Source: Mytilus trossulus
Taxonomy: Eukaryota
Assembly: GCF_036588685.1 (NCBI RefSeq)
Contig: NC_086376.1
Location: forward strand, 26,412,001-26,476,000
Length of the DNA stretch: 64,000 nucleotides
Direction: 5' to 3'
In this document: positions 608 to 62,808 of the stretch, piece after piece
How positions within the stretch are numbered: the stretch's first letter is position 1
Layout: every line of letters begins with the position of its first letter
Notes under the pieces: generated by a model
Told to the model about the DNA's origin: nothing
Database searches by the model: none
Seen by the model: only the letters and a program-made list of their open reading frames with translations
Position numbers and translations under genes: made by a program

Positions 608-665
608 GACTATTAATGACGTTAAAATACTAAATCCCTGTGATGTGTTTTAGTCGATTTTAGTC
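608..665 (+). promoter_or_regulatory. SECIS element (selenocysteine insertion sequence)
   Basis: Helix I GACTA/TAGTC; core ATGAC(616-620)/CGAT(655-658); 10-bp helix II GTTAAAATAC/GTGTTTTAGT; apical AAA 632-634. Confidence 0.75.
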
Positions 666-1137: not shown

Positions 1138-1239
1138 CTATTGTTTCAAAAAAAGGGAGAAGGTTTGGGCCCATTAAAACGTTTTATCCCGCTGCAAATG
1201 TTTGCACCTGTCCTAAGTCAGGAATCTGATGTACAGTAG
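1138..1239 (+). ncRNA. Twister-like motif, family A variant
   Basis: P2 GGGA/TCCC, GAAGG with loop TCCTAAGT, P3 TGCA/TGCA; cleavage-site TAA reads TTA. Confidence 0.62.
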
Positions 1240-2295: not shown

Positions 2296-4540
2296 TCAAA
2301 TGTCTCTTCGTTTATGGATCATCGTTTTTATACCTATGCATAGATTACCTTTATTGAAGTTTACAATACCTTTCAGAATTTTAGGTGTTTAGTCATCCTG
2401 TCAAAGTTTTTGCAAAATACAATTAGTGTGGAAATTTCGTGAAAGCTCCTAAATACATTATCGCCCACATGTTTTTATGATATTCGATTGCCGTTTACAT
2501 GTTAACGGAGAGGGTAGTACATGTATGTATTGAATACATCGATATGGCAATAAATGAGAAGGCATCCCTTTTGGCACGTTGAATTCAAAATCCAAAAGCA
2601 TTATTTAACTACCATTTAACAGTGCAACGTAACATCTTGAAAAAACTTGAAAAATATATATACCGAATCAGAATTGATTTTATATCAACCATTTCACAGT
2701 ACTCAATATGTGCCAAATTGTTTGACAGGAGTGGTTCGATAACTCTCACGACTCTATTTTATAAGGCATACGTCAATACATGTCCAAAATTCTACTTTTT
2801 GTATTCACATCGGCAAAGTGTAAAATATTGTGTGTTGCTGAGATACTTACTATTATGAGTTTTGTAATAAGAGACTCACAACAATATCTATTCAGCTTTC
2901 TTAAAAAAAATGTGAATATTAATAATAAGCGTAGGATGATAACTTCAACTTGAGGAACAAAGAAATTAAAAAATATTATGTAACAGATATATTCAAATCC
3001 GATTTATGAGGAGACAGTCTTTTTTATTTACCTATATTTAAATTATAACATATACGTTTAGAAAAAATATTGAATCACAGCTGGTGCGTAATAGGAAGAT
3101 TGATGGTGCATTTGTAATGGAATAGTCTAATGCACACTTAATGATGGAGATGTATTATAACTTTTTGCACTGAGAAGATTGACAAGTAACAAAACTTGTA
3201 TTATGGGACCAATTAGATTCTTGACGGTCCACAAAACGTAAAGGATAGGTCCCACTCACTGTCTTACGATAGACATTAATTAATTTATAGTTGAGGACCT
3301 CTGTGTGACTGTGGGTAATACTAGTAAATGCTTTACCAAACAAACGTAAAATAGGATAAAACTAGGTGTGTCGATAGTGTATACTGCATCTCCCGTCATG
3401 CAATTTCAAATTAATCAATAGCAATAATATCAAAGGACGACAAGTGCACCAGTTTACATTATAAAATATGATTTGAATAGTTTTGATATAAATGGAGGTG
3501 GTCGGAAATCCAATGTTGTTTTTTGTTCAAAATCACATGACGTGTTTTCAGGCTTTCATAAATATTAATTATATTTTGAAATGTTCAAAGCATTATCATT
3601 AAATTTTCATTTATGTTATATACATAGTATATATACATATCTGAACTTTATTGCGCGTCTGGCGCGAATACATAATTTCAATCCTGGTATCTATGATGGC
3701 ATTTTCATTTGCATTTCTTTGTGTGAAGATGCAGTCTTTCGAACTGTCAAGTATTTTTGGCACCTCCTGTTATCCTTTTTAACAATCATTGCATATCAAT
3801 ATCAAAATTGTTTTAATATTTTAAACATCTCCTAGACCGAACACCTACATACCTTCATACTTAAATTAAGGTATAGCAAGAATAACCCCCTTCTGTCTCA
3901 ATAATTCAAGGAATATAAAAACCCAAATAATCGAACTAGATGTTTTAATTAACTGTGAATGCCCCATGAAGTCGTTCCTTTCAAATACTTTTTTTTATAC
4001 AATGTGTGTTGATTGCCACAGAATATTATTATATGAAACCTTCTCAACAGTATGTATCACCCTGAAATGCAGTTCGAACCAGTTGTCTATAGCTATATTT
4101 GAATCTGGTTGTGTTTTATATCCTTCAATACAGAAGACATATTCCTGATGTTTTAATGTATAATGAAGTGACAGAATCGAGTCTTGCAAGTTAAATTATT
4201 TGAAAAATGTTAAAGAAATAAAAGAGACATTGATAGCATGCAAAGGAAGTATTTGAAATATAAATAATTCAATAATTGCTTTACATTTCATAATGCCAAA
4301 AAATATTTGTGGTTGCTACCGCATAGTCTTTTACATTTATATTTAGGTCTAATGCTGGTAATTACTAACTTCTATATTATTTAAATATCTGTAAAAACGT
4401 GTAACAATTTGAAAACGAAACGTGCATTTACGTTAATGAGATGCAATCATTAAATTATATACTCTTTGAAATCTAATCAATTGTGATAATCTTTGATGTG
4501 TCAAGTCTATTTTAAATAATTAAAATACTTTGATCATACA

Positions 4541-4963
4541 TATAAAAAAGAAGATGTGGTATGATTGCCAATGAAACACCTATCCACAAGAGTCCAAAAT
4601 GACACAGACATTACCATCTAAAGATTATCGTACGGCCTTCACCAATGAACAAATCCCATACCGCATAGTCAGCTATAAAAAGCCCCGATATTACCATTTA
4701 AAACAATTCAAACGAGAAAACTAACGGCCTTATTTGCATTAAAAAATGAACCAAAAACAAATGTGTAACACATCAACAAACGACAACCACTGAATTATAG
4801 GCTCCTGACTTGGAACAGGCACCTACATAAATAATGTGGCGGGGTTAAACATGTAAGCGGGATCCCAACCCTCCCCCTAACCCGGTACAGTGGTATAATA
4901 GTACAACATAAGAACGAACTATAAAATCAGTTGAAAAAGGCTTAACTCATCAGATGGACAAAA
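4541..4963 (-). mobile_element. Family A repeat with twister-like motif (4787-4893)
   Basis: Absent from the paralogous site near 12040; shares terminus and internal motif with 1100-1489. Confidence 0.8.
4787..4893 (-). ncRNA. Twister-like motif, family A variant
   Basis: GGGG-GAGGG...TAACCCCGC, P3 ACAT/ATGT, CCTG-TTCCAAGT-CAGG, P5 CCACTG/CAGTGG. Confidence 0.65.
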
Positions 4964-5100: not shown

Positions 5101-7229
5101 TTTTGTTTCTGTCTCATTGGTGTATACCCTACATTTTTGTATATTAATTTAGTTCTATTCTAACAAAATGCATAATATCTAATGATTTGAAAGTACTCAA
5201 TCATTATATAGTTAGTTCTTTTCATTAATACTATCAAATGGAACATGCAACTATCTAATTTTATTCTCTAAAATTTAATTATATATCCTTAAAATTAATA
5301 CATCCAAACACGCATTTCGTCTAAAATATTTGAAGAATCATTTGTGTAGCTCAAACTAAAATAATTGAAAGGTCAAAGCAATGAAAAACTATACCAGTTC
5401 ATTCGTTCGCAAACAATATTACAGGTTAGTAAAAGTAAAAGTTTGGTGGAAATGTTTTTTTTTAAACCATCTGTCGACATCCGTATGCAAACCAATCGTA
5501 TCCCTCTTCTAGCCATCGTGTGCGATTGTTAGTTCGAGGAAGTCTTATTAAACAAGAGCTCATGAATAAGAAGAGCAATAACTAGCATAATTCTTGAGTA
5601 TTACAATTCGCCATAAAGACAGTGTCTGCTCACTGAAATGTTACATATAAAGTGCTGATCTGCAGCATTTTCTATTCCATCATGAAATTGCCAGCGAGGG
5701 TTGGTTGAGAACTTAAGTCGGCTACCTCTAGCCTTTGTTGGTCTTGTATGTATTTTAAAAATTTATAAGTATTCCGTTCATATTGTATATTGCTAATCTT
5801 TTTGTCATAAAAGAAGCTTAAATTGAAATGAGTGGGAGAAAAGTTTTTTGTAATAGTAAAACAAGTCTTTTCCATCATTATCCTTTGCACCCCTGTACCA
5901 TATTGGTAATTCCTTTTAAGGAATAAAACCTTTGAAAACTTTTATATAAATCATATATAACTTACTCAAGGCTTTGTGGTATAAAGTGACACATGGCAGG
6001 AAAATTGTTTCCGATTTAGTTGTTTCTACGTTTAAAAGCACATTTATAACCTTTGCCAATAATACATGTGATGTGTGAAAAAAAAATTAGTGGCTAAAAT
6101 CCTTAATTGTTATTACAAATTAAAAAGATTTAAACTGATATTAGTTTGAGATATACATCAATGAAAAGACATTATATCGGCGATGACATTTTTTTCTAGT
6201 ACGCTGGTATATTTTTATGACTGAGGCATGCGATTTGTGCTTTATGAAAAACAAAAAACAGGTCCCGGTAAAACTTTCAAACAACAAAACGTGGGTTAAG
6301 TTATGAAGTATGATTGTTTTAATCGTTGTTCGATGACCTCTTTATCTAAAAAGTATAGAAACTATATAACTTTCATTTCAAACGACAAAATAAAATGTAG
6401 ACTATTAAAAATGAAATAAAATCATAAATAAAAAAAGCGGTCTTTTTTATAACACAATTTATGTATACTATTTTTCAATCATTCTTTATTGAATTAAAGT
6501 ACTTTTTACTCAGTTCCTGTCTCAATTTGTTTTCCTGTATTTTCTTTTCTTGGTAAATAAATAATGATTCGAAGAAATATTTTGTCTTATCCAGCTTGTC
6601 CTCCCTTTCCGAAAGACTGAATTGCCAGCCCGTCAAACTTGCCCTCCCTCTTCTTGAGCTCTCTTATAAAAAAGAAGATGTGGTATGATTGCCAATGAGA
6701 CAACTATCCACAAAAGACCAAAATGACACAAACATTAACAACTATAGGTCATGTCTGTTAGTTTTGTTTACAAGATAATGGAATTTGATGCGACTGTCAA
6801 ACAAGTGAGAGGTTAAGCTAGCTATAAAACCCGGTCTAATCCACAATTTTCTATATATTAAAGAAATGTCTATATAAAGTCTGAAATATTAGAGTTGTTA
6901 TCCATTCGTTTGATGTGTTTGAGCTTTTGATTTTCTCTTTTGAATACGGACTCTCTGTTATGAATTTTTCTCGGAGTTCAGTATTTTTGTGGTTTGATTT
7001 TTTTAACAAACCAGTTTAATACCTCTATATAATTACATTTTAAAGTATGATTCATTATTCTGATTGGCTTCACTGCAATCTCGCGTTATACCTTAATAAA
7101 CTTCATTACACAATAAAAATTTATCATTCATTATGACACGAGGTCCCACAATAAAGTGCAATTTGAATAAAAAAACCTTGATAAAAATCGTGTTTTCATG
7201 ATTCTAGCTATAAAATGTAATTATAATTA

Positions 7230-7938: not shown

Positions 7939-8494
7939 TAAAATTGAGAATGGAAATGGGGAATGTGTCAAAGAGACAACAACCCGACCAAAATAAAAAA
8001 CACAACAGCAGAAGGTCACCAACAGGTCTTCAATGTAGCGAGAAATTCCCGCACCCGGAGGCGTCCTTCAGCTGGCCCCTAAACAAATATATACTAGTTC
8101 AGTGATAATGAACGCCATACTAATTTCCAAATTGTACACAAGAAACTAAAATTTAAATAATACAAGACTAACAAAGGCCAGAGGCTCCTGACTTGGGACA
8201 GGCGCAAAAATGCGGCGGGGTTAAACATGTTTGTGAGATCTCAACCCTCCCCCTATACCTCTAACCAGTGTAGAAAAGTAAAAGCATAACAATACGCACA
8301 TTAAAATTCAGTTCAAGAGAAGTCCGAGTCTGAAGTCAGAAGATGTAACCAAAGAAAATAAACAAAATGACAATAATACATAAATAACAACAGACTACTA
8401 GCAGTTCACTGACATGCCAGCTCCAGACTTCAATTAAACTGACTGAAAGATTATGATTTCATCATATGAACATCAGGCACAATCCTTCCCGTTA
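7939..8494 (-). mobile_element. Family C repeat, 5'-truncated insertion with twister-like motif
   Basis: Near-identical inverted copy at 59791-60157; flanked by GTTAAA (7937-7942, 8491-8496); empty site at about 14452-14457. Confidence 0.88.
8176..8266 (-). ncRNA. Twister-like ribozyme, P5-permuted, best-preserved copy
   Basis: P5 GGTTAGAGGT/GCCTCTGGCC; P2 GGGG/CCCC; GAGGG; T^AA; GC; P3 CGCA/TGCG; P4 CCTG-TCCCAAGT-CAGG. Confidence 0.75.
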
Positions 8495-16621: not shown

Positions 16622-19600
16622 GCCTCCATGAACGACTTTTAGACGACATTTATTACGAACCCATAATGTATTATCGACATCAATTAAGTCATTCAGTGAT
16701 TGATGATCGAGAACTTTGGCTGTTAAAACGTTTGGGTAATGATGCCGAACTTGACTTTTTCATTCGTCGTTGTTTCTCGTTTCCTATCGCCGTATACATA
16801 ACGTTGGCAAGGTAAGGGAAGACAACATTTCAATAATAGAAAGTTGATAAACTATGCAGGGTTATGTTGAAGACTGTTTCGTCCCTTTTCTTTAAATTTT
16901 GTTTACATCGGAAGATATCAAGACCTCGTTGATATATATATTCCTTATTAACTTCACAAATAATACTCGATGGTCTAGATTCTAGGTACTGACGTTGTTT
17001 ATCATCTTTATTATGTGTTATAGTGGTCTTTTATTTGTTTGTGAATATTTTTAACATTAACTGTTGAGTCATTTTGTGTGATGTCCATGTGACGTGGCTC
17101 GGTACTTATACATCCCTTAATTGTCATAGAGTGCTATGGAACATTGTTGTGTTCCTTCTTTCGTTTTTGCTTTGTGCTTTTTTATATTCTTTTCTGTTTT
17201 TCTTTTTAACATAATCGTTTGTTTTTTATAGTGATTAAAGATTGTACCACTATTACTGACATTTTTACCAGTGATAGAAATAAGAAGATGTGGTATGAGT
17301 CCCAATGTAACACTCTCCAACTAAGTCACAAAGTGTAAAAAGTAAACCATCATAGGTGAAAGCACGGTCTTCAACACGGACCTTTGGCTCACATCGAACA
17401 CTTAGCTAAAAAGGGCCCTTAATTGACTAGTTTTAAACAATTCAAAGAAAAAAAACATCAGTCTTATCTACATGAAAAGGATATTGTGTCTGTTTTTTTC
17501 ACAGATTGTTGTCAATATCATAGAATTTAATGCCACTGTCATACATACAAGTGAGAGGTTCAACTAGCTATAAAACCAGGTTTCATCCATTTTGTACATC
17601 AGAAAATGCATGTACCGAGTCAGGAATATGACAGTTGTTATCCATACGTTTGTTGAGCTATAGATGTCTTCCATTTGATTATGTATTTTCCGTTTTGAGA
17701 TTTCCTCGGAGTTCGGTAATGTTTCTTGTTACTTTTTATAAAAACAGATCCGGTAGATAATGATTTTTTACGTATAAGCCTAATAACAACTATGTGAAAA
17801 TCGATACATCAAATATGCTATAAATAACTTATCAAGTGATAGCCCTTCCAGAAATAGCCACGAAAAAAAACCAATTCAGAAAACTATCATGCAAAACAAC
17901 AGTTCGGGAGGGGTTGTTCTATCCTAGAGCAATCAGAAAATGGGACATATTGTACAACTGTAAGGTCTCTGACTCAAGTCTGAAACTTTCAATGCTCAGT
18001 TCAGTCAGCTAATCAACTGACATCTTTTATTTGCACCTGTATATAAACTTCAACCAGTTTTTGTTCTTTTTATCAAATTTCAAAATTGTTTTCATGCACT
18101 CATTCCAAAATTGTCGTTTACCAGAAGAAGAAGAAGACTATGACTATGTTGACATGTTCATTCGTTTGCAAATTTAATGAATGAAACTTTGGAGTAAATG
18201 AAAATGTATGTACTTTAAAAGTACATGATGGCATTATTTGCTTTCATTTATTTGTAATGTACAAGTGTTTCTCACTAATTTAAATAATAGTAAACCCTTT
18301 TTATTTGATTACTGAACATGAAACTGGATTATGTTGTGTGAGTATTTACTAACGGTGGTTTCTTAAATAATTCATAGTACTTGTTAAAAGTTGTTTAAAT
18401 AATACTACTTTGAACCAAATGAATTTAATTGATACAAAAAGATATCTTACGCAAGTGTTAATCTTTAATTGAATATTTTACCCTAGGCAATTAAAATGTA
18501 AACACTCACCGGTCACCGGATCAAGTGCCATCTTTACCATATGGTATAAAGAATTAAAAAAAACATCCAATTTCACTGATTCTCCACTACGAATTGTTTA
18601 AATGTGTTTTTGATCTTGGAAAATATTTTAGTATTGAAAGTCAAAACGACCAAAGAACTGAAATCAGTGTACGTATGTAATTTTCATATTGAGATCGAAG
18701 TTAAAAAAAAATCAAATGTACTGAAATATAAAGAAATTTGATATCGTGAAAATATTTTAAAATACGGCTTACCGCATAAGGAATGTATGACTAGAGAGAT
18801 AACGGATCATATTCCATAACAGCGCCGACAACATCGCAAGTACATGCAAAGGGCGGGTGGGGGTGGGGCGGGGGCTTTTGCGGAGAGGAACGGTTAGTAA
18901 AAAAACTGACTTTGAGCTCACATTTTGTTTCAGCTCAAAACTATTGAACTTGAGGTATATTTGAGATAAGAACTTTTAAAAATGAGGATACCAAGACAGA
19001 CATGCATAAGTTATGACAAAAAGTAAGAACGAATAAAACTACAAATAATTTAAATAGTGAGAAATTTCACAAATATCAGTTTGATATAAGAGTAATCAAT
19101 TTCCCGTCAAGCAGTGTATAAAACATAGGAATACTATTTATTCAAGTTCTTCAATTCATTAGTTGTATATTTGTAACTGAGCTGTAAAAAGAGACAAACA
19201 TGACACAAGCACGTCACAGAATATTTTAACAGACGATCGTAAATTATACAAAATACTTTTTTTTTTACATTATTATGTAGCACTTATGCACTGCGCTCCC
19301 CTGAAGCACAAGACTTGTCGGCTATCTTGAAGAATTCCTGACAACCATGCATACTATTTGACAGGTTTATAGCAAGTAAATAAAATATATGATCTCACGA
19401 AGTTAAAGGGTGCCTTCGCATGGGTTGGAAAATCCACCTTAATATAAAAGACCTTTGACTTAATTCACTTTCATGTATTGATTTATGGACTTCGTGTTTC
19501 TATGTGAATTCAAAGTTAACCGATTGAAATCGGTTCGAACTTATATTAATCGTTTCGTACGACAAAAATAAAGAAACCATCATAATGTATCAGAGAGAGA

Positions 19601-21036: not shown

Positions 21037-22694
21037 GTTGTGAAACTGGACAAATAAAAGTCACATTTTATGTGACTGTACTTATTGCACTGTCTGGTAT
21101 GTTTGCAGTCGGTAAACTTTGACCATTCCTTACAAAGTGGACTTGGTTTTCTGTTAAATTATTGTATTGTTATACTTTTGAAATGTGTCTGCAGAAAATC
21201 AGACTAATTGTTATGCGAATAATTATTGATTAAAAAATTGACATGCGTTGTCTACATCAAAAAGTAATAAGACATATATAATTAAGACGCAAACTATTTT
21301 CTTGCAACATCCGAAGATTGAGCCACCATTTCGATAGGAAAGAAAATGTTGCTTCCAAACTGAATGCGTTATCTTCATATACAGATCTTCCAGTTTAATT
21401 CAAGCTTTTTTTTCTTTTTTTTTTTAACCAAATGATGTTTGTGTCTTGATACGAGAATTGCGAAGCGACAGAACAGGGTGATATAGGCGAAGGGAAATAC
21501 GATAATGTCTCCTCTCGCATTGTAACGTCGCTAATTACTTAAAATTCTCCTCTCACATTGTGACGTCGCTGATAATGCCTTGTCTCGTTTTGAAGCCTTG
21601 ATACGAGAATTACGGAACAACAGAGCAGGGTGATATAGGCGTAGGAAAGGACGATAACTTCTAATTTCTGTGTCATTTGGCCTCTTGTTCAGAGTTTTCT
21701 TGTTGGCCTTCATACAACATCTTCTTATATATGTATATATATGCATAAAAACAACATTGTACAAATATTTATGAACATTAAAATGCACTGAGGTATTTCA
21801 TATCTTTTTAATTAAAAAAAATATCCGTTTATAAGTATGTTAAGACATTCAGTCTTTGTCATTACAAACAAACATTACTACTAGTAGTTATATATATATA
21901 GATTTCGTAATGCATTAAAAGTCAATATGACGTAATGTGGTAAATGAAGGATAATGTACCCGTTTGTTATTAATTCCGGTACATTAAAAGACCATTCCAT
22001 TTTTTGACCCGATTAATAATTATGAAATCAACAAATGAAAACATGTTGATACTATAAATTAACTCTAATACACTCATTGCATAGGATTCCTTATAGAGAT
22101 TAAATATCCCTTCTATTGTATTAGCGGAGATTAGAAGAGACATATAATCGACTGTTTTTATAAACTATTTATCTGTTTTATATCTGATTTGGTTGACAAT
22201 GACATAAATTAAAGATTTTAAAAAAAATATTCATTCATCGAGATGTCTTGTTCTTATATTGTAAAAACATACTGTTTGATTTTCTGAATTTCATACTATA
22301 CCCGGTATAAGACGATTAAATGGGTGGTGAGGAATAAGCAATCTATATTAAAACATAATAATACTGTACCAGTCGTAATGTCGAATGTCGTTATATTTGA
22401 TTGAATTTGGATTATTCTTTAAAAAAAAGTGTTATTATAATGTTTTGTTGGTACACATTATCTGAAATAATAGTGGAAAATGTGTAAAATTTCTGCTGCA
22501 TCGTATAAATAAGAACACTGTGTGAAAGAAGATGTGGTATGATTTCCAATGAGACAGTTTTCCATTAGAGACCAAATAATACAGAAATTAACAACTATAT
22601 AGATGTAAGAAGATGTGGTATGAGTGCTAATGAGACAACCCTCCATCCAAGTCACAATTTGTAAAAGTAAACATACATATATACATGATGTATA

Positions 22695-24095: not shown

Positions 24096-25317
24096 TCATA
24101 TCAAAATAGTTATAAAGCCAAACAAATACAAAGTTAAAGAGCATTGTGTAAAATTGTCTATGATGTTGCTAAATTGGTCCAGCAATTTCAAAGTGATTTA
24201 TGGATTTTTTCTCTCTCCGGAAAAAAACCTTATCTATCGCATCACCATATATTTCATTATTTTTCAGAGGTATAATTTAATTGATAAACTACTTCTTGTA
24301 ACTTCTCTCTTTTTTTCCCCACCCACTAATTCATGGCTCTAAAGAGGTTGTAAAAATTCTATAAACCTGTATGATTTGGTCCTTAAATATATATCTTGTA
24401 ATCATGAATACACAAAGTATAGTTACTAATGTCATAGATAGGTATAAGAGAAGATGTGGTATGAGTGCCAATGAGGCAACTCTCCATCCAAGTTAAAATT
24501 CGTAAAAGTAAACCATTATAGTTGAAAGTATGGTCTTCATAGCCGTTTACCCATACCGTTTATTCGTCTCACCAGTCACTAGTCTCAGACATATAAATTA
24601 TATATAACAATAGATGATTGATCTTATATGGATTGGTCAATCTTAAAATCAAACTAAGAGATTTTTTAATTCGTTGTCCATTACAAATCTTTTAAAATGG
24701 GCATTACTTAATGCCATATCTCTATTTTCAATTAATTTATCTATATCTAAGTTTGACAGGCCATTAATGAATCTCTGAAGTGTTTGTTTGAGGTCTCAGT
24801 GATCCAAGGCCTTCATATATGATTCAACTTAAGAAAAATCTTAAAGCATGCCGACATACAAAAGGACTTTTGTTATTTTTACTAATGATCTTTTGACGTC
24901 ATTAAAGTCATTTGAAAATTTAAATTCCTTCGATTGAAGGTGGGATTTAAAAGTTGCGTGTTGGACACCTATTCAGTTTCCGCGTTACTTAAATAAACAT
25001 ATAAACATCCGATTCCAATTGGTATACCGCTTCCGATCATATGTATATATAAATATACACGCAGCAATTTTGTCATGATCAGTTTTAATTTATTCAATAG
25101 TAGAGGAATAATAATTTCAAATATTTAAGAAACTTAAAGTAAGTAAGAGTATATAAAAAGGTGCCTTTTCTTTCGGACAGTGAACTAATTATAGGGTAAT
25201 AATTTCTCTTGCGATTTCTTCTCTATTTTCAATGTACAAAGATTTGCTGTTATCACAGCATCATTTTGAACAAGTAATTTTTTTTATTATTAAACTGTTG
25301 ATTTTATTTCATTGCAG

Positions 25318-33875: not shown

Positions 33876-35489
33876 GGTACTACCGCTGTTAAAAAAAGTC
33901 ATAAGTCGATTGAAAGAAAATAAATCCGGATTACAAACTAAAATCGAAGGAAACGCATCAACTATAAGAGGAAAACAACGGAGCAAAAGAAGCACTGAAC
34001 TGCAACAAAAACAAACGCCAACATATATAGAAACGGACTACTTGATTAAAAATGGTTGGTTGAACCTGGGTTTATTGCTAGCCATCTTCTATCTTTTTTT
34101 TTGTGTTCATTGTGTTCTCCGGCTTTGATTGACTTTTAGTTTTTAGTTATGTTATTTATATCCTCTCTCTTTTTATAAAAGATTGAAAAGCATCATTCTT
34201 TAAATATTGTTTTAAGTGTTTCACTTTTATACATTCCACCGCCTTTTATTTGATCAAATTTCAATCATGCACCGTCACTGTTGCAATTGTAAACGTAGAA
34301 AAAATAATTTCAAGTTTTCAACTTTGACCAGACCACGATGAACACATACTATACGAGTTGTAACGGCTACTGACAATTTGTATTAACTTCTAAACTTAGC
34401 TATTTAGATCATAGAATAAAAGCAAATATGTACTAGTAGAACCCATTGTACAAAATAAAATAAAATAATATTACTAATTTTGCTAGAAATAATTGCCAAT
34501 GTGTTAAAACATACTGTTGGTGCGAACGTGACAAAATAATCGCAATTCTAAACTATCCACAGAAATGATATGCTGCTCCTAGTCATTATACGTATCAATA
34601 TTTTCATATATTATTCGTCTGTATTAAGTTGTCAGAGTGTGGTTGTTAAATATTGTATAAGTCATAGAATATCTATATAGGGATCACCAAAATGAAGCAA
34701 ATTAAGAGAAATTAAAGTTAATTTTAATGATTAACAAATGAAATTACATAGAAAGTTGACACTATCGATATGACCATCTTTGACCTCGCTTAAGATACCA
34801 ACAGGTTCAATGGTAATTCTACACACTACTTTAACTTCTTAACCATATCTTGTTAAGGATTTTTATTTCACTAAAGCAACAAATGAATTACTCTCTAAAT
34901 GTAAGAAAAAAATATCATCGATATCTACCCATATCATCAATTACATACACAGGTACGTATCAATTAGTTAAGAATCCTGACGTTTACACTTAGAGCGTAC
35001 ATAGCACTTTTGTGAGGCAATAACTGTGATGAACTTATAGAATTCTTGAGTTAATTAACAACATTATCTGTAAATGTATCCATTAATGTCTAAAACTGTT
35101 AATACGTAAGCTTATGGGGAAAAACTAAAGTATGTGACTGCATGCAAAGATCAAGCTAAAACTAACTAAAGTGGGCATTTTTATAAATGTCCTGTTTACA
35201 AAACATTGAATTTCACCACTGGGTCGATGCCACTGCTGATGGACGTTTCGTCCCCGAGGGTATTACCAGCCCAGTAGTCAACATTTCGGTGTTGACATGA
35301 ATATCAATGATGTGGTCATTTTTATAAATTTCCTGTTTACAAAACATTAAATTTTACGAAAAACTAAGGTTTTTTTTTTATACCAGGCATAGATTACCTT
35401 AGCCGTATTTGGCACAACTTTTTGGAATTTTGGATCATCAATGCTCTTCATCTTTGTACTTGTTTGGCTTTATAAATATTTTGATATAA

Positions 35490-35533
35490 GCGTCACTGAT
35501 GAGTCTTATGTAGACGAAACGCGCGTCTGGCGT
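35490..35533 (+). ncRNA. Type I hammerhead ribozyme, intact
   Basis: Stem I GCGTCA/TGGCGT, CTGATGA, stem II GTCT-TATGT-AGAC, GAAA, minimal stem III AC-GCGC-GT, GUC cleavage triplet. Confidence 0.93.
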
Positions 35534-35844
35534 ACTTAATTATAATCCTGGTACCTGTGATAACTATTTACACCACTGGGTCGATGCCACTGCTGGTGGA
35601 CGTTTCGTCCCCGAGGGTATCACCAGCCCAGGAGTCAACATTTCGGTGTTGACATGAATATCAATAATGTGGTCATTTTTATAAATTTCCTGTTTACAAA
35701 ACATTGAATTTTACGAAAAACTAAGGATTTTCTTATACCAGTTATAGATTACCTAAGTCGTATTTGGCACAACTTTTTGGAATTTTTGATCCTCAATGCT
35801 CTTCATCTTTGTACTTGTTTGGCTTTATAAATATTTTGATATGA

Positions 35845-35888
35845 GCGTCACTGATGAGTATTATGTAGACGAAACGCGCGTCTGGCGT
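35845..35888 (+). ncRNA. Type I hammerhead ribozyme, one stem II mismatch
   Basis: Core intact; stem II reads GTAT/AGAC. Confidence 0.88.
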
Positions 35889-38761
35889 ACTAAATTATAG
35901 TCCTGGTACCTTTGATAACTAATATGGGTAAGTACATATGTTACACGGGAAAGCAATAGAAATCCACAAGAACGGACATTCAATTATACATTTTGCAACC
36001 AATTCTGTTCTTTGGCAGTTCAGAAGTTTAAATTCGTAATGCATTTGTAAATGCTTTATAAGATGAAGTGTATTATAATTAGATAGAGTAGATTTGTAAA
36101 ATCACAACGAGTTTTCAAAATACAAAATTAAAGTGTCGTCGTTTGAAAGATAAATTCCAATAAGATATTCTCCTGAATTGTATTTCTCATCAGAAGTACA
36201 TGGGAACTAGTAATCTTATAATTTAAAAATAAATAAAAATTAAGATAAAACACAAATCTTCAACCCATGTTACAGGCTTAAATTAACCAACTCAGTTTCT
36301 ATATTAGGAAACAAATCAGGAGTCCAAGCTTATCAGATCTAAATATACCATAGAACCATGGAAACACAACAAATATAGCTGAGAGAATATACAAAAACCA
36401 AAGAAAGATCAGATAATGTTGTTCTTCGAATTAAAATAAATCCCTCTAAATTAGTTAACATTGATCCATTGATAAAACGAATCCTTAAAATGACTGTCTC
36501 ATTCCAATAAAGATTATGGATATTTTGGAGTTAGATATTTCATAACGCTTCATTTAATTTTAAATCTATACTATGTCCATAGACAAGGATAAAATTAAAT
36601 AACCTTCACAAAAAGGCGTAGCCGTCCCTATTTTAACATATCCATTCATAAATATTTATTCATCAATATCAATATTGTATGAAAGTTTCAAATGATTGGA
36701 ATTTGGTGTTTTGTTCATTGCTCAAATAATTTTTCTGTTTCCCTTTTACGCTTCCGTATGTTACATGGTCATGAGACGAGACAATTATTAAAAGCTATTT
36801 TTTAATGAATTTTTGACCTTTAATCGATGTTAAAACCCTTTTGGTTTAAACATCCAAAATATCATACATGACGTTTTCCCTGATTTCACGATTAGAGTTT
36901 TGAGTCAAAGACTGTAGATTAATATTTATCATGTTTGTAATTCAAACAGTTAAAAAAATGTCTCCCTTTATTTAAAAAAAATCTAAAAATCATCGATTGA
37001 AAAACAGTTAAATTTAAAATATTGTTAGCCTTGACGTTTTTAACAGACACATTTCATAATAGAATAAAAACAGATTATAGTCTTCAATGTTTACTTTATG
37101 TAATTAAAACCATTTGAGACATGTAGCCTAATAAGGTTATTTCAAAGTTAGTAATCAGTATAAGTCAAATAATTACAAGGATGACATTTTTTTTTATTGT
37201 GTTTCATATCCCACTTTTTTTAATTCAAAAAGAAAGTACCAGATATGGATAGGAGCTTTGATTAATGAGAACAATAGTATGATTGGTATATCCATTAAAA
37301 TTATAATGCTATCATAATTCATGTTACCCGCACATCATACAGAATTGTCGAGTATAATGTCATTGCGACATCATACATTTGCAATGTTATGAATACTGTA
37401 TCCCAAACAACCTTTTCAGAAACAGTAGTTTGTCTGTTCATCCTTTTTTTTTCTTGCAATTTTATCAGATCTCCTCATATGCATGATTGTTTATTTGATT
37501 TAATTGATTGATAATCAATGATTAATCGATCTAAAATCAATAGGGTTCGAAAAACCAGATAGTTCGACTTGGCTTCTAACCTGACATGTCAATAAATTGT
37601 GACAAATCATGCTTTCAATTTAAACTGTGAACTACGAATATGCTATACTGTTTTCTTGAGCCTGTCAGTCCAAAGTCGGTTACATTCTTGTTTACTTTGC
37701 CTTGTAAACATATTTTCATATGGAAACCTTGAAACTGTTTGAAATACTTTGGGTTAAAATAATTGTAAATATAGGTTAAAGTTTACCGATGTTTAAATAT
37801 GTTACAAAATGTAAACTATGTAATTTGTATTAATCAACAGTCAGTATAATAGAAGATATGATAAATGGTTGCAAACAGAACTCAGAGAAAAGGAACGACA
37901 CATGAATCGAAAAATGTATTGTGAAAACCTTGAATGGTAACCACAGTCTTCTCAACGCCTATTTTCTTGTCAGATTTACATAAGCATAATAAACTGCTTA
38001 AAGGGAACCGTATCTGCGAAAAATAACCCGAAATTGTGACCTTAAATAAAGGCAACTGTAGTATACCGCTGTTCAAAAGTCATTTCAGGAAGATAATATG
38101 AGTCTTGATCAAGTTTATTTTCCTACTTGAAGCAAGCTTTTTAAATTACAACTTTATTTTGCACATTTTTATAAATATATTGATATGTTGCTTCTTTTTG
38201 AGGATTTTTTTTTTAAATCATCGACAAAAAGAAATGAAAATCCGAAAAAGTAGAAGCCAATTAAACAATTTACTACACTTAAAAGAACCAACAGGAAATG
38301 AGTCAGCAAGACAGATAACTGAAAAACAAACATTGATCAAAAAGGAAACCTACAAAAAACTAGGATTTTACCTATAAGTATCAAATGAAGCTGGAAATAA
38401 CACCAATTGTTTTTCTCATGTCTAGATTGGTCAATGAAATATATGCGGTGGTACGTTACTCAATAGAAGATTGGTCAGTATATCATTCCTGACCCATCCA
38501 CGATAACGAGTTCATCAACCAATAGATGTAGGAAGATGTGGTGTGAGTGCCAATGAGACAACTCTCCATCCAAATAACAATTTTAAAAGTAAACCATTAT
38601 AGGTTAAAGTACGGCCTTAGTTTGTATATACATTAATCTACCCTCTTGTTTACTAGTAATCGAACATATCTGTTTAAAATAACTTTGTTCTGTAAAAGAA
38701 TAGAGAAGACCGTTACATAATGATCCAACAAATACATTGAATAAAAAATCAATATGATATA

Positions 38762-39859: not shown

Positions 39860-41115
39860 TTCGTTTCTGTGTGTGTTACATTTTAATGTTGTGTCGTCAT
39901 TCTCTTATATTTACTGCGTTTACCTCGGTTTTAATTTGTGACCAGGATTTGTTTTTTTTCTATCGATTTAAGAGTTTTGAACATCGGTATACTACTGTTG
40001 CCTTTATTTATCAGCAGATTAAGCAGCTAGGTTCTTACTTAAAGATAGATTATAAAACAAAATCTGACATAAATATCCAATTTTATATTGAAACAGATTT
40101 AAGCTTCACTTAATGGGTCGAACGTATGTTTTTCGAAACTTGACACCAAACATTAAAATGAGCGTGTAGATGGAAAAACAACGCCATGCCAATTAAGGAC
40201 AAATGATCACAAATTCCTTTGTGACGAACTTAACACTGACTAGCTAAATAGAGGCAACAGTAGTGTACCGCTTTTCGAAATTCAGAAATCGATATTGAGA
40301 AAAAAATCATCCTGGTTTCAAACTAAAACTGAGTGAAACACAACAAAAATAAGAGGAGAACAACGACACAACAGAAACACAACACTAAAATGCAACACAC
40401 ACAGACAAAAATTCTATAATAATATACCAATGACAATTTTCCTGACTTGGTACAGGAGATTCTAAGAATGGTGGATTGAACCTGGTTTTGCAGCTAGCCA
40501 AACCTCTCACTTATATGGCAATATTAAATATAACACTAAAATGACACCATTACATGACAAGAATACAGTTCAAATTAATTCAAGAAAATTTAGGGCAGGA
40601 AATTAGTCAAAGAAACAATACAATATAGTACATTTCGACAACGAAACAACAGAAACACTGAAGTGAACAAAAACAAAAAACAATGCAACACAAACAGAAA
40701 CAAACTATTCGACAACAATTGTAATTGTTCTTACTTGGTACAGGACATGCTTTTAGAAGAAAGAAAAAATGGTTGATTGAAACTGTTATTGTGGCTAGCC
40801 CAACCTCCCGATTTATATCCATTTTATTTGAAAAGTAATTTTTTGTAAATTTGTCTTGGCATCAGAATCCGGGAACATGTTTGAGACAGAATTGCATTTT
40901 AGAAACAATACTCAAATGATGACGTTCCATATACATTAAACAAAATGGAACAGGTAAATAAAGACAACTGAAGTATACCGCTGCTAAAAAATCATAAATC
41001 GATTGAGAGAAACAAATCCGGCTTACAAACTAAAACAGCGAGAAGCACATCAACTATAAGAGGAAAATAACGAAATAACAGAACACAGAAGTGCAACAAA
41101 AGAAACAAACAGCTA
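39860..41115. repeat. Cluster of family E repeat fragments in both orientations
   Basis: Terminus AAAGGCAACAGTAGTATACCG and variants at about 39985-40008, 40250 and 40960; also near 33875, 38048 and 60720-61062. Confidence 0.7.
40430..40521 (-). ncRNA. Twister-like motif, family E variant
   Basis: GAGGT with loop TACCAAGT; CAA-TCC-AC; CCTG/CAGG. Confidence 0.55.
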
Positions 41116-41263
41116 ACACATGTATTTGCAGGGGAATTTTTATACACAGTATTTCGTTCGTATGGACAAGATTTCTTATCTTATAATAAAACAAATGATT
41201 AAAGTAAAAAATACATGCCTAACTTATGAATAATTTAGATTTAAACTTGCTTGAGCGTGTTCA

Positions 41264-42803
41264 TGTAAAAGGTGATTTCTGGACAGTCAAATAATAACAA
41301 GTCCAATTCATCTTAGTCTAGGGTTCTTTATTCAACAATGATGTAATCATATAATTATTACAAACCCTACAAAATATAACAAGATACATATTAAACACAT
41401 TAATCTAAAACTACTATATTATACTGTGTTACAGTTATTATACCATTACTGCAGATCAACATAAAATCAGAACATTGAATGTTTATAGTTCTTATACAAT
41501 ATCAATACACAAGGTGACATGACATGCCTGATGATAATTAACACTTGCAAATATTCACTCATCGTTCATATACAATCATCAGCTTTGACAATTAAACATA
41601 CTACTATAATGTCAAGATCATATAACACTATTTCAATTAACTAAATAGATATATGTAAATCCATATTCTACAAATAACCATAGCATATATATCAACGGTA
41701 GATAACTCTATATTATATCAAATGTTCTTCACTGTCTTACATGAACACTATATATTATGCTATTTCAAGTATACATAAACTCACCAGTCTGTGGAACTGA
41801 GTTTAATAACTAACATCGACAGTCTACACAATATTAACAGTAACGATCTTCATACTTCTACAGTAATGGTAACAGAGGTTCACATCAAATATGGTTCTGT
41901 AAACAATGTATGACAATAATAAGTAATCTGACTTTAATATCTTAAAGGCATTATACAATTCATAATAAATTATACTAATCTTTATCTTTCATCTCGAATT
42001 CACAATTATAAATATAAGTAATCTTATTTCAATACTAAAAACATTAAGTACAAGTACAATTGTACTGTTAATTACATCACATTGGATATACCAATGTCAT
42101 TTCATGACTACATGACAAAAGGTCAAGGTCATTCATAAAAATAGATTAAATCTCTCTTTCTAACATTTATACTAAAATCTCTCAAATAAATCAGATTCAA
42201 ACAACACTCAAAGCACACTCTTTCATAGGGCTGGGAAGCTTACCAAAATGAATGTAATAAACATTCATTTTAAAGTTATGGATCCAGTTCATCCAAGACA
42301 CCTCAAAGAGTACAAAATGTAACTTACCATATAAAGTCATGATGTCCTGTTCCAGAATGAATTCCTTCACTATACTAATCCATAGATCTTATGGAACTAC
42401 TAATCAAACACAATATAGTCTATGAGCACAAAGTGCATCAAAACATACGAATATATCAGGATCACAACAAAGACATCAATCCTCCATTACTGTTTTCAAA
42501 ACTACCACCAAAACTGGGGGCAAGGCTTAATAAACCAATCAGAATACAAGAAAACCTATACACTCTAGTGAACAGTGAGTACTGATAGTAAAATCAATAA
42601 TAGGTAAATGCTACAAGGTAAACAGTTATATTAAATGGATCAATGAATAATCAATAGGCAATCAATAGGCAATCAATAGAATAAAGGTAAACTAAGTAAA
42701 CTACTCTGCAAATGAAAGAATATAATAAATGGTGTCTCAGAATAACCTATTAAACATATAAAATATATAAATGATTAATATGATAAAAATCCACTCTACC
42801 ACA
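41264..42803 (-). repeat. 3' LTR (1540 bp)
   Basis: Preceded on the minus strand by the polypurine tract; minus-strand AATAAA at 41327-41332; AATCAATAG(GC) x3 repeat near 42648-42680. Confidence 0.97.
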
Positions 42804-45800: not shown

Positions 45801-48367
45801 TTAAGTCCTACATCACGGAGTCTCTGGATAATTCTCTCTAGGCGTACAAGGTGTTCATCTATGGACTTCGAGAAGATAATAAGATCGTCTAGGTAGATGT
45901 AACATATACGTGTGTGTAAATCACCTAAGCATTCCTCCATGAGTCTTTGGTACGTAGCTGGTGCGTTGGAGAGTCCAAATGGAAGTCTGTTGAACTCGAA
46001 AAATCCTAACGGTCCAACGGTGAAGGCGGTGCGTTGTTTATGTTCCTCCTCAATCTCCACTTGATGGTACCCGCTCTTCATATCTAGCACTGTAAAATAT
46101 GTGTTGCCTCCTAAGGAATCCAGAATCTCTTCAATGCGTGGAAGCGCATATGAATCTTTAATGGTCTTTAGGTTAAGCTGACGGTAGTCTACACACATTC
46201 TAAGCTTTCCGTCCTTCTTACGTACTAATACTACATTCGATGACCAGGGTGAATGGGATCTTCTTATCACTCCTGCTGATAACAGTTGTTGCAAATGGTT
46301 ACGGACCTCTTCTAGCATAGATGGTGGTATTCGTCTGTGACGCTGCTTGAAGGGAACATTGTCTATCAAATCGATACGGTGACGTACTGCTGAAGTGTGT
46401 CCAATATCATCGTCTCCTTTTGAAAATATATCTTGGTATCTGTGTATGAGCTCTTTTCCTCTTTCATAGTCATCATCAGTTAGATCATCCATCGGTAATT
46501 TAATGTCCTTCATGATATCTTTAAATTCTTTTTCCTCCGGTGTAACAATATCTTCAATGTCAACTGGTTGAATTTCGCAAATGAGAGCTCGTGGTTGTAG
46601 TGTAACGGTTCTTGTTGTGACGTTTGGTATGTGTATTGGTATACTTCCTCGTTGTTGACAATCGTAAGTTATTACTGTTGGCATGATATCTAAATCTTCT
46701 GGTAAAGCTGAATTAATAGTTGGTTGTAGTATAGCACACATTTGTTGTTGTTGAAGCTGTTTGTCCAAATATCCATTGATTACAACTTGAGAGTTAGCTG
46801 GTATTGTAATCGCGTGTGTTTCGGCGGATTTCACAACTGCTAATCGGTTATGACATCTTTCCAATTCCTTGTTTCTAAGATTCATGCATCGGAATGCCAA
46901 ATACCATGGAGTGTGTAGATTAGCTTCTTGTAAATACCTTGGTCCAGTGTTCTGTTCTACTTCCTGCATTACAACTGACATGATGTTTGTTCCTATCAAT
47001 AATGGTACGGTTATGTTGTATTCGCTGTCCGGTATTACTAGAAATATGCCTGGATATGATGATCTTGTAGAAGATATTCCATGTAGTTGAAGGTCTGCTT
47101 CGATGTAACCAAGATAAGGCATTGATAGTCCGTCTGCACATTCTATCTTCAATATACGGGTAAGTGATTCAATCGGTGTAGATCTCATGTGTCTGTTGTA
47201 AAATGACTCGCTGATCGTTGAAACCGATGATCCTGTATCCAGCAATGCTTTTGTATCTATTCCATTTATGCTGATGGAAACTTCATTTGCCGGTCCGCAT
47301 AATCTATCTTCTTTGTTGTTTGTAGTTGGTGCTGATTGATAATCATTCGTAACTAGTTGATAATTCATGGCTCGATCAAATTTCCTAGAGTTATCCAGTC
47401 TTACTTTACATCCTATGGCAATATGGCCAAGTTGTCCACATCTCCAACATGTTTTCTGATGTTTCTCTCGTCTCTTATTCATATCCAATGGTCTATATGC
47501 TATAGTTTCATCTGGTGTTTGATGTATCATATTTGTCCTGTTAAGCTTACTGTTGTTGATCAATTGTTCTTGTCGTTTCTCTAAAAGTTCAATCTGTGAC
47601 ATCAACTGTTTAACTACAATCTCCATTTCGTTCTTATCCTTCTTCCTTGGTGCATTCACTCTCTTAGCTGGTATAGGTTTCTTTTGACTAGGTGTGTTCT
47701 CTTTGGTATATTCCTTCTGTTGATGTTCCAATTCTCGCATCGCCAATAAAAGATGGTTGAAATCCTTGATCGTATCAAACTTGTATCCTGAAATTCTCTT
47801 GAGTTCCGGTTTTAATCCTTTCCAAAACATTGATCGTAACATATCTTCTGCATCTTCCTCATAAATCTTTCCTTGACGGCGTGCTTTGTTGTAAATGTCT
47901 TCTAAGCGACATCCCCAGGTGGAAACATCTTCATCTTGTTCCTGTCTGGCTGTGTAAAACTGTGCCAATAACGCTTCCTTTGGATCTACAATTCCATAAA
48001 TACTATCCATCTTGTCGATGATGTCGTCGACAGTAGCTTTAGGGCCTAATCGCATGACTATCTTGCTAGGTTCTCCTCTAAGTGAACGTCTAATGGCCTG
48101 AGCAATTACTTCATGTGCATAGTTTTCTATGATAAGACATAACACTTGGTACCTCCATACTTCATAGGTGTTGTCTCCTTTATTGTCTCCGGAGAAGGTA
48201 GGAATCTTTGGTATATATCCAGTATATAATGATTTCTGATGTGAGAACTCCTTCATCCAATCTTTAAATGCATCTGGAGATTCTGCATTTGGCTTCATAT
48301 GCATATCCTTGAAGGCAGCAATGATGTTCCGAACTTCCTCTTCTGTTAAATCAACTGATGTATCCAT
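42890..48367 (-). CDS. Gag-Pol polyprotein: PNMA-like capsid, CCHC zinc knuckle, aspartic protease, RT, RNase H, integrase, acidic C-terminal tail
   Basis: Frame open 42890-48535; likely start MDTSVDL at 48367; motifs CWRCGQLGHIAIGC, LLDTGS, LPFGLSNAPATYQ, YLDD, TDACQTGLGAVL, HNDMGH...CPRC, MDF...SDQG...E. Confidence 0.95.
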   Translation of the reverse strand: MDTSVDLTEEEVRNIIAAFKDMHMKPNAESPDAFKDWMKEFSHQKSLYTGYIPKIPTFSGDNKGDNTYEVWRYQVLCLIIENYAHEVIAQAIRRSLRGEPSKIVMRLGPKATVDDIIDKMDSIYGIVDPKEALLAQFYTARQEQDEDVSTWGCRLEDIYNKARRQGKIYEEDAEDMLRSMFWKGLKPELKRISGYKFDTIKDFNHLLLAMRELEHQQKEYTKENTPSQKKPIPAKRVNAPRKKDKNEMEIVVKQLMSQIELLEKRQEQLINNSKLNRTNMIHQTPDETIAYRPLDMNKRREKHQKTCWRCGQLGHIAIGCKVRLDNSRKFDRAMNYQLVTNDYQSAPTTNNKEDRLCGPANEVSISINGIDTKALLDTGSSVSTISESFYNRHMRSTPIESLTRILKIECADGLSMPYLGYIEADLQLHGISSTRSSYPGIFLVIPDSEYNITVPLLIGTNIMSVVMQEVEQNTGPRYLQEANLHTPWYLAFRCMNLRNKELERCHNRLAVVKSAETHAITIPANSQVVINGYLDKQLQQQQMCAILQPTINSALPEDLDIMPTVITYDCQQRGSIPIHIPNVTTRTVTLQPRALICEIQPVDIEDIVTPEEKEFKDIMKDIKLPMDDLTDDDYERGKELIHRYQDIFSKGDDDIGHTSAVRHRIDLIDNVPFKQRHRRIPPSMLEEVRNHLQQLLSAGVIRRSHSPWSSNVVLVRKKDGKLRMCVDYRQLNLKTIKDSYALPRIEEILDSLGGNTYFTVLDMKSGYHQVEIEEEHKQRTAFTVGPLGFFEFNRLPFGLSNAPATYQRLMEECLGDLHTRICYIYLDDLIIFSKSIDEHLVRLERIIQRLRDVGLKLSPKKCSFLQRRVKYIGHIVSADGVEPDPEKVEKVATWPRPKTPEEVRQFLGFVGYYRKFIRDFSKIARPLTDLMPTTCKKKTRGKKKPIEPTSWHWNKEQNEAFETLKSHLSSPPILGFPDYKKPFEVHTDACQTGLGAVLYQQQGEHKRVIAYASRGLSKTERNYPVHKQEFQALKWAVTEKFGDYLQGNKFTVYTDNNPLTYVLTSAKLDVTGHRWIAALAAFDFNIIYRPGRNNADADGLSRLPAIISQQDCTPDIHGKESIKDPTNISTESVKAICSSIQQQPYVECLAVTTKDLASKVDTASTTKIDIREEQLRDPVIRTWIDYLSHRQKPRKEDIPSSPAHNQLFANFDKLVIQNGILYRRTTVNGDTKDQLVLPTSQITSILRSLHNDMGHQGRDRTTSLVKDRFYWHGMTKDIEEWIQKCPRCLKRKQLPNQRAPLTNIRTIQPMEIVCMDFLTLELSKGGFQHILVITDHFTRYAQAIPTRNMSARTTAEAFFNNYVVHYGLPERIHSDQGGNFESRLMKELCSITGVKKSRTTPYHPMGNGQCERFNRTLLSMLGTLQNHQKADWKSYLGPIVHAYNSTKQETTGFSPFALMFGREPRLPIDLALGIETTKEQKTNTKYVENLKERLKKSYELATNSAKIAQGRQKKHYDNKVRGAILLPGDRVLVKILSFDGKHKLSDKWENDSYVILDQPNSTIPVFTVRKESGHGRKRTLHRNLLLPIGSVSIDEDEEKEKPRPTPAPRLRPRKNRETDPQPTPSLHDSTLTSSDEESDDDYLVYVVTEPDVEDLSAPHSTFDELETQDDDDTVQDEDDDDQEHVAEQQDTGIEGDDLPSEKNDTVDPVLELDEVSETDQQVADATLFDDTEEPGQDRTVDETVDNVPQPDIEAPWIEVQPRRSVRARTLTATTKYKDFVVSKKSQPQPDWKSRADYLKDIASSGTFKGMEDQILAGLLKIATEK

Positions 48368-49898: not shown

Positions 49899-49899
49899 A

Positions 49900-59790: not shown

Positions 59791-60157
59791 ATTTTAATGT
59801 GCGTATTGTTATGCTTTTACTTTTCTACATTGGTTACAGGTATAGGGGGAGGGTTGAGATCTCACAAACATGTTTAACCCCGCCGCATTTTTGCGCCTGT
59901 CCCAAGTCAGGAGCCTCTGGCCTTTGTTAGTCTTGTATTATTTAAATTTTATTTTCTTGTGTACAATTTGGAAATTAGTATGGCGTTCATTATCACTGAA
60001 CTAGTATATATTTGTTTAGGGGCCAGCTGAAGGACGCCTCCGGGTGCGGGAATTTCTCGCTACACTGAAGACCTGTTGGTGACCTTCTGCTATTGTTTTT
60101 TTATTTGGTCGGGTTGCTGTCTCTTTGACACATTCCCCATTTCCATTCTCAATTTTA
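59791..60157 (+). mobile_element. Family C repeat with twister-like motif
   Basis: Reverse complement of 7939-8307 at high identity. Confidence 0.88.
59832..59922 (+). ncRNA. Twister-like ribozyme, P5-permuted
   Basis: Same as 8176-8266 with one P5 mismatch; predicted cut 59875/59876. Confidence 0.73.
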
Positions 60158-62599: not shown

Positions 62600-62808
62600 A
62601 CGACTGTCATACAGTGAGAGGTTTAGCGCTATAAAACCAGATTCAATCCACCATTTTCTACATTTAAAAATGCCTGTACAAGTCAGGAATATGACAGTTG
62701 TTGTCCATTCGTTTAATGTGTTTTTTTCTTTTGATTTTGCCATTCAATTAGGGACTTTCCATTTTGAATTTTCATCGGAGTTATGTATTTTTTTTTTTTT
62801 TACTTTTT
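62600..62808 (+). mobile_element. Family D repeat with twister-like motif (62603-62698)
   Basis: P5 ACTGTCATA/TATGACAGT, GAGGT, P3 CATTTT/AAAATG, CCTG/CAGG; other copies near 6750-7005, 13895-13985, 17485-17737, 54625-54708, 55885-56005. Confidence 0.7.

Follow-up and report, generated by a model that had tools for sequence, protein, structure and literature searches.

Within the window, a 64,000-nt stretch of the Mytilus trossulus genome, two copies of a 91-nt motif lie inside a mobile repeat, one at 8176-8266 on the minus strand and one at 59832-59922 on the plus strand. The repeat extends over 7939-8492(-) and 59791-60157(+), and its arms at 7996-8307 and 59791-60102 are 98% complementary. 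Direct reading of the window confirmed the letters that a sequence-only reading had reported at both places, with all listed segments present and in the order it gave. From its 5′ end, the motif comprises a 10-nt strand, AUA, GGGG, GAGGG, U, a 10-nt perfect palindrome and C. A second perfect 10-nt palindrome, which ends in U, is followed by AA, CCCC, GC and a 4-bp hairpin; CCUG, the 8-nt loop UCCCAAGU, CAGG, A and a strand that pairs over 10 bp with the first strand complete the motif. The two copies differ by 1 base, a change of G to C at 59837 that breaks one pair of the closing helix P5. The 10-bp P5 closure that had been described is present in full in the minus-strand copy and has this one mismatch in the plus-strand copy. 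The predicted cut falls at 8223/8222(-), equivalent to 59875/59876(+). Features are listed in Table 1.

Table 1. Positions in the window of the carrier repeat, the parts of the motif and related cores (R1 and R2, covariance models described in the text).
Feature	Position	Strand	Basis
5′-truncated Naiad family-A tail carrying the motif	7939-8492	-	blastn against L031:5781-9021, 555 nt at 99.5% identity
P5, 5′ strand GGUUAGAGGU	8257-8266	-	direct reading; 10 contiguous pairs with 8176-8185
P2, 3′-side strand GGGG	8250-8253	-	pairs with 8217-8220
GAGGG, the conserved G-A place of twisters and the GGG strand of T1	8245-8249	-	T1 covaries with the P4 loop
Palindrome 1, UGAGAUCUCA, in the position of the 3′ strand of P1	8234-8243	-	direct reading; relatives
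Palindrome 2, AAACAUGUUU, in the position of the 5′ strand of P1	8223-8232	-	final U directly precedes the predicted cut
AA after the predicted scissile bond	8221-8222	-	AA in 35 of 40 rows, alignment A6
P2, 5′-side strand CCCC	8217-8220	-	direct reading; covariation
GC of loop L2, one T2 strand	8215-8216	-	pairs with GU of the P4 loop
P3 hairpin CGCA-UUUU-UGCG	8203-8214	-	direct reading; double changes
P4 CCUG/CAGG with loop UCCCAAGU	8187-8202	-	CCC to T1, GU to T2
A after P4	8186	-	direct reading; alignment of relatives
P5, 3′ strand GCCUCUGGCC	8176-8185	-	direct reading; closing helices of relatives
Second whole motif	59832-59922	+	predicted cut 59875/59876; within the 367-nt element tail 59791-60157
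Family-B core	1155-1223	+	R1, 85.5 bits; inside the 905-nt family-B tail 585-1489
Core of a third Naiad family	4803-4877	-	R1, 68.1 bits; R2, 71 bits
More distant or decayed core	62614-62688	+	R1, 22.5 bits; R2, 42.8 bits
More distant or decayed core	40440-40510	-	R1, 19.7 bits; R2, 38.1 bits

The carrier element

The family-A tail at 7939-8492 covers the 3′UTR, starting within the SECIS and running up to the element's 3′ terminus. A 151-nt query taken from the repeat found at least 40 perfectly identical copies and 499 candidates in the 1.3-Gb genome, which has 14 chromosome-size contigs and a G+C content of about 31%. When 30 loci were aligned on this 151-nt anchor, all shared a sharp 3′ end about 290 nt downstream of the motif, and upstream similarity ended at a different point in each copy. 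Graded 5′ ends combined with a sharp 3′ end are the signature of 5′-truncated retrotransposition. The carrier is a young, high-copy, 5′-truncating retroelement.

Long copies contain two open frames in one phase, joined by TGA. The full tandem unit reads as a single frame spanning about 1000 codons. Downstream of the start codon it contains four in-frame stops, all of them TGA and, in family A, all at cysteine-like positions; the stops upstream of the start codon are TAA in three of four cases. A SECIS match directly follows the stop codon (L031:8430-8494; SECIS_1, 32.8 bits, E 8e-4, with a gathering score of 35), and the motif lies in the 3′UTR about 330 nt after the stop codon and SECIS and about 290 nt before the 3′ end of the element. 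Translation of the unit yielded the blocks IIYLLT-U-N..GIQYVGET...LGLN, SCNCS, GPKY, PADKA and YLDD, that is, an N-terminal GIY-YIG-like block, CxC, GPKY, DKA and a C-terminal YLDD reverse transcriptase (RT). A Pfam search with pieces of the element protein gave zero domain matches. The RT part has 4352 homologues, and RT queries returned about 46,000-48,000 first-look candidates in the genome. Head-to-tail tandems occur with periods of 4016 and 4026 nt and one motif per unit.

These features were compared with the diagnostic features of Naiad elements, including their selenoprotein subtype, given in PMC8557442. Motif reading of the unit found the N-terminal GIY-YIG, the CxC linker, GxKF/Y, the change of DKG to DKA and the C-terminal RT. 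Equally present are a unit of 3.4-4.4 kb, 5′ truncation, partial head-to-tail tandems and a very high copy number, and, for the selenoprotein subtype, in-frame UGA at Cys positions with a SECIS after the stop codon. Judged by motif reading and RT homologues, the element is a selenoprotein-encoding Naiad Penelope-like element. The clam and spider Naiads of Craig et al. 2021 (PMC8557442) resemble it in GIY-YIG, CxC, DKA and C-terminal RT, in UGA at cysteine positions with a SECIS directly after the stop codon, and in high copy number, 5′ truncation, tandems and a unit of about 4 kb; they differ in that no ribozyme is reported for them. That paper describes Naiads as being without canonical hammerhead ribozymes, and the word twister has 0 occurrences in it. 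The earlier proposal that a mobile retroelement carries the motif thus stands, on the truncation profile, the frame, the SECIS and the protein motifs, with a Naiad Penelope-like element as the carrier.

Several further observations concern Naiads at large. Two loci hold full-unit head-to-tail tandems (L151, G000:C9:72124500-72134499; L152, G000:C3:19053500-19063499), and long satellite arrays begin directly past the 3′ end of the last tandem unit, with periods of 60 and about 70 nt at L151 and of 44 nt at L152. SECIS-like matches follow the RT stop in several Naiad families at 28-33 bits, below the gathering score of 35; one, of family B, lies at 608-665(+) in the window (28.4 bits), and others are found at L088, L090, L070 and L124. 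Selenoprotein Naiads are known from clams and spiders, and they also appear in this genome and in many marine metagenome contigs. Short repeats of the form AGAAGATGTGGTATGA... occur in the window at 4549-4613, 6673-6737, 17274-17476, 22527-22672, 24438-24539 and 38522-38618; by blastn, several of these are the last 70-200 nt of Naiad family-B-like tails, extremely 5′-truncated. Across sequencing runs X1-X20, which bear three organism labels, 69-98% of sampled words of a 501-nt stretch were present. Sharing at this level across labels indicates a young family that is nearly unchanged among related species or populations.

Conservation and covariation of the fold

Family B provided a first relative outside family A. 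Its RT is 70% identical to that of family A, and detectable 3′UTR similarity is restricted to about 43 nt that correspond to the twister core, at an equal distance from the 3′ end. Within this core, P2 is CCCC/GGGG in family A and UCCC/GGGA in family B, P3 is CGCA/UGCG and UGCA/UGCA, and the T1 pseudoknot is CCC/GGG and CCU/AGG, respectively. The family-B copy at 1155-1223 has the A after the cut site mutated to U. Proteins P0004, P0019 and P0020, used as baits for further families in the genome, returned only families A and B.

For a broader comparison, we drew on 80 Naiad RT loci from marine metagenomes, with RT identities from 99% down to 38%. A covariance model of the core, R1, was built from six sequences and holds P2, P3 and P4 only; a second model, R2, was built from 23 matches. 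In related elements, R1 scores for the module ranged from 91 down to 20 bits. Among the approximately 35 metagenomic loci with more than 50% RT identity and enough 3′ flank, about 30 gave full-length R1 matches on the RT strand and downstream of the RT. The core model found the same module in about 35 related metagenomic Naiad loci and in other families of the genome, and R1 also matched a small number of more distant loci as well as five other places in the window. R2 added further matches beyond these. Loci at 38-48% RT identity were mostly without a match to R2; the motif may be limited to a large subclade of Naiads, or its versions at these loci may be too divergent for the model to recognise. 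At one locus (L121:125-202), a twister-like core precedes the RT gene, with both on one strand (RT match 2501-3592), as expected if it is the tail of a preceding tandem copy (pseudo-LTR).

Covariation was scored in a set of 32 distinct rows, the alignment of which was fitted to P2, P3 and P4 and thereby favours those helices. Standard pairs filled 92.0% of cells, compared with 74.6% in shuffles, and double-sided changes were found at 13 of 16 pairs. The covariation score was 0.450 against 0.159 in shuffles, with 0 of 500 shuffles scoring as high, and sliding the partners by 1-3 columns as a control lowered it to 0.013-0.073. Across the relatives, double changes occur at all four pairs of P2 and at all three modelled pairs of P3; in P4 the two outer pairs covary, and 30 of 32 rows retain the inner G-C. 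T1 shows double changes at three of three pairs, for example from G-C to A-U in family B and in L101. The first pair of T2 is A-U in 9 rows, G.U in 9, C-G in 4, G-C in 1 and U.G in 1, and its second pair is C-G in 30 of 31. T1 and T2 lie outside the search model, so their covariation is not an artefact of fitting, and the register in which they covary is that of known twister structures (PMC5408937). P5, judged as contiguous pairs anchored beside the core, is represented by 24 distinct closing helices of 4-21 contiguous pairs in nearly every lineage. One clade (L082, L083, L088, L090, L092, L100 and L076) has GAGG-U with only two T1 pairs, together with a constant C.A or C.U mismatch in P2. 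Copies within a family were rejected as a source of covariation; they are 99-100% identical or decay neutrally and are uninformative.

Compensatory changes thus maintain P2, P3, P4, P5, T1 and T2 across Naiad families with RTs from about 43% to 99% identical. The proposed twister architecture in type-P5 order is borne out by covariation in all six of these elements. Covariation of P2, P4 and T1, whose absence, together with that of cleavage, would have counted against the sequence-only reading, was found in the cross-family set of 32 rows. It is well supported that the motif is a conserved, selected member of the twister fold in circular order P5.

Relation to known twisters and the palindromes at P1

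Twisters, described by Roth et al. 2014 according to the review PMC5408937, offer a detailed template for comparison. The motif has an N^A cut dinucleotide with the conserved A (U^AA), followed by the 4-bp P2 CCCC/GGGG; P4 has an inner G-C and an L4 loop of the U-CCC-AA-G-N type set out in PMC5408937. T1 joins L4 to the strand after G-A by three pairs (two only in the one clade), and T2 joins the GC of L2 to two L4 bases, GU. P1 differs: the bases after GAGGG and those before the cut show no mutual complementarity.

At gathering thresholds, Rfam gave 0 matches in the window. With permissive settings, the twister-P1 model aligned partially, over P3 and P4 with its loop only, at 13.3 bits (E 4.7; gathering 67.2), and one P4 pair in this stretch differs on both sides from the family consensus, U-A in place of G-C. 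On relatives, the Rfam twister models scored 23-24 bits, up to 24.1, against the same gathering score of 67.2. A genome scan with RF02684 gave a best score of 24.9 against a gathering score of 37.6, among 79 scored of 26,711 candidates. In the Rfam twister search that had been proposed as a check, every score was thus below gathering, and the alignment in the window was a partial one. Both on score and on P1, the motif falls outside the twister class as Rfam defines it.

The closest comparison is with type-P5 twisters (RF02684). The motif shares with them the order of parts, U^AA, the 4-bp P2, the L2 GC, an optional P3, the inner G-C of P4, the loop UCCCAAG-N, the A after P4, GAGGG, T1 (three pairs), T2 (two pairs) and an open P5. 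In canonical type-P5 twisters a P1 hairpin connects GAGGG to the cut site, whereas the Naiad motif, a putative ribozyme, lacks an intramolecular P1 hairpin and has two self-complementary segments of 8-10 nt. Degenerate or absent P1 and integration into a retrotransposon are also seen in the T-variants of Perere-3, an RTE-type element of Schistosoma mansoni (PMC8501958). Those twisters are of type P1, stand at the 5′ end of a LINE, have their P1 completed by the target site and have been shown to cut; the Naiad motif is of type P5, stands in the 3′UTR of a Penelope-like element and has palindromes, and its cleavage is predicted. PMC7761336 mentions truncated twisters in RTE elements. A literature search of partial coverage, with most subscription journals outside it, returned nothing on twisters in Penelope-like elements or Naiads, on twisters in bivalve retroelements or on a dimeric twister, in agreement with the statement in the sequence-only reading that no description of such a variant was known.

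The two strands at the places of P1 are each self-complementary and do not complement one another, so that an ordinary P1 is indeed absent, as had been claimed. The two palindromes stand at fixed places in 27 of 29 distinct linkers. Palindrome 1 occurs in 21 distinct sequences, whose centres show G-C, C-G, A-U and U-A, and palindrome 2 in about 15 distinct versions that end at N-1 or N-2. The four bases at the centre are self-complementary in every case. In one version of palindrome 2 the symmetry depends on G.U pairs, an indication of RNA and not of DNA, and the half-sites vary in sequence and in length (8 or 10 nt), a poor fit to a protein-binding site. The suggestion that the palindromes matter is upheld by palindromy that is conserved across many sequences, centres included, and we regard this pattern as evidence that both palindromes have probably been under selection for self-complementarity.

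Two ways of pairing within one molecule were rejected. An intramolecular P1 would require the strands after GAGGG and before the cut to pair with each other, and they do not; a hairpin formed by each palindrome would leave its loop bases free to vary, and the central four bases covary. Palindromy kept with many sequences, centres included, argues for pairing between two RNAs. The simplest reading is that each palindrome would form a duplex with its twin in a second copy of the motif. Co-folding predicts dimers, a result that is expected of any such hairpin-rich RNA and does not discriminate.

Cleavage, competing readings and a proposed two-copy mechanism

Three raw RNA runs from a species that carries the element gave about equal coverage of the two strands of the tail. 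Of the reads, half continue into unrelated flanks, which indicates that most of the signal comes from copies read through in other transcripts. In these three runs, no pile of read begins or ends reached one fifth of the local depth at L031:8734/8735, and depth did not drop across the predicted cut site. The lack of both signs argues against efficient cutting of isolated copies and is still compatible with cutting that depends on a second copy. Inserted genomic copies contain sequence from either side of the site, with their 3′ end about 286 nt beyond it; the RNA that was reverse-transcribed was uncut at that site. We also counted genomic copies that have a non-consensus base just before a perfect 24-mer. 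Breaks at the cut site numbered 176, compared with 53 one base upstream, 114 one base downstream and 105 about 24 nt downstream; this excess of 1.5 to 3.3x over three controls is modest, comes with large scatter between positions and was not counted as support. Of the self-cleaving ribozyme that the sequence-only reading had put forward, the fold, the carriage by a retroelement, the absence of P1 and the palindromes held up, and cleavage did not find support in the RNA reads or in the sub-threshold Rfam scores.

A separate signal appeared at L031:8882 (about position 8075 of the window, minus strand), where molecule starts numbered 80/399 and 114/539 in two of the three RNA runs, in the class with the first mate on the minus strand. 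It could be a start or processing site, or it could stem from reads of a repeat that shares the GC-rich block starting there.

The reading that we favour, and hold to be reasonably probable, is a twister fold in the Naiad 3′UTR that cleaves itself at 8223/8222 and forms P1 only between two copies. An unlikely alternative is that the motif is an active twister that cuts as a monomer, like the P1-less laboratory "mini-twisters", and that its palindromes have a different role, for example in bringing two retroelement RNAs together for packaging, template switching or the formation of tandem copies. All core nucleotides are present. P1, although phylogenetically conserved in twisters, is dispensable for catalysis, and imperfections in it do not lower activity (PMC5408937; PMC11662667); at the 5′ end of Perere-3, twister variants whose P1 is weak or missing are active (PMC8501958). 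However, a monomeric cutter should cut all sense copies, including the thousands that are read through, and the reads do not show the corresponding end pile of at least one fifth of the depth; the palindromes, moreover, sit exactly at the places of the P1 strands, 1-2 nt after GAGGG and ending at N-1.

Quite unlikely, in our judgement, is a twister-derived fold that no longer cuts and acts as a structured 3′UTR signal, for example as a handle for the RT of the element. The RNA reads without a cut signature, the inserted copies that always span the site and extend 286 nt beyond it, the clade with weakened T1 and P2, and the low Rfam scores would all agree with such a signal. Yet the nucleotides that serve catalysis in twisters, and not folding alone, are fixed across families (the A that follows the cut and the G-A that precedes the T1 strand), as are the U..A of the loop and the inner G-C of P4, and in the corresponding position canonical Penelope-like elements retain a true ribozyme (PMC8557442). 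That an ordinary repeat resembles a twister by chance is hardly credible. The single sequence, with its Rfam score of 13.3 bits and a minimum-free-energy fold that recovers P3, P4 and P5 at a z-score of only -1.9, would allow it; covariation in five helices, including two pseudoknots outside the model, and the constant position and strand relative to the RT gene in dozens of diverged elements speak against it. It is this comparison across elements, rather than the single sequence, that excludes chance.

Under the favoured reading of a self-cleaving twister with P1 between copies, the RNA would cut itself between U and A at the predicted site. P1 would not form within one motif; instead, palindrome 1 would pair with palindrome 1 and palindrome 2 with palindrome 2, the partners being two RNAs or two motifs 4016 nt apart in one tandem transcript. 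Two parallel struts of 8-10 bp, similar in length, would connect two ribozyme cores, and at both cut sites the duplex of palindrome 2 would substitute for P1. A second copy would then be needed for cutting, isolated copies read through in host transcripts would be spared, and two cuts in a head-to-tail tandem would release unit-length RNA. Self-cleavage and dimer-dependent processing of transcripts are what we infer from the fold and the palindromes. The more specific arrangement, in which Naiads carry a twister with P1 split into two self-complementary strands, so that two motifs form two parallel helices and two active sites, is a tentative proposal that we consider possible and short of probable.

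A precedent is offered by the minimal hammerheads of Penelope-like elements, which act as dimers according to work cited in PMC6765202 (Cervera and de la Pena 2014; Lunse et al. 2017). As presented there, they too are small motifs in a repeated 3′ or pseudo-LTR part, with a cut-side helix that is too short within one molecule, palindromic and suited to pairing between two copies; unlike the Naiad motif, they are hammerheads rather than twisters, and the examples cited there belong to Penelope-like clades other than Naiads.

Naiads are among the most abundant retroelements of bivalves and of many other invertebrates. Work of 2021 drew attention to them as Penelope-like elements able to thrive without the hammerhead, and the part played by this ribozyme came into doubt. 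If the favoured reading is true, a conserved twister in the corresponding position would bring back the rule by which Penelope-like elements depend on a self-cleaving RNA, two unrelated ribozyme classes would fill one niche, and the motif would be the first natural dimeric twister. Penelope-like elements with an endonuclease would then generally require a self-cleaver gated by copy number in their life cycle, and this need would have been met twice. Natural twister variants in the thousands, missed by current models, would be added. The paired palindromes would represent a simple, testable design, a ribozyme switched on by a second copy of itself, which bears on how elements spare host transcripts and on how unit-length or circular RNAs arise from tandems.

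Other features of the window include two matches to the type-I hammerhead, at 35490-35533 and 35845-35888(+), which are 355 nt apart and score 33.0 and 28.4 bits (gathering 34). They lie in a tandem repeat at 35211-35925 with a period of 355-357 nt, and the repeat looks like a small tandem hammerhead retrozyme. With this retrozyme-like hammerhead repeat, the genome appears to hold both hammerhead and twister-type mobile RNAs. Between 40001 and 52000 the GC skew is strongly negative, at -0.14 to -0.17, with a G+C content of up to 0.40 at 44-48 kb. Two 300-nt stretches in this region, at 41263-41562 and 49899-50198, are 100% identical and 8636 nt apart.
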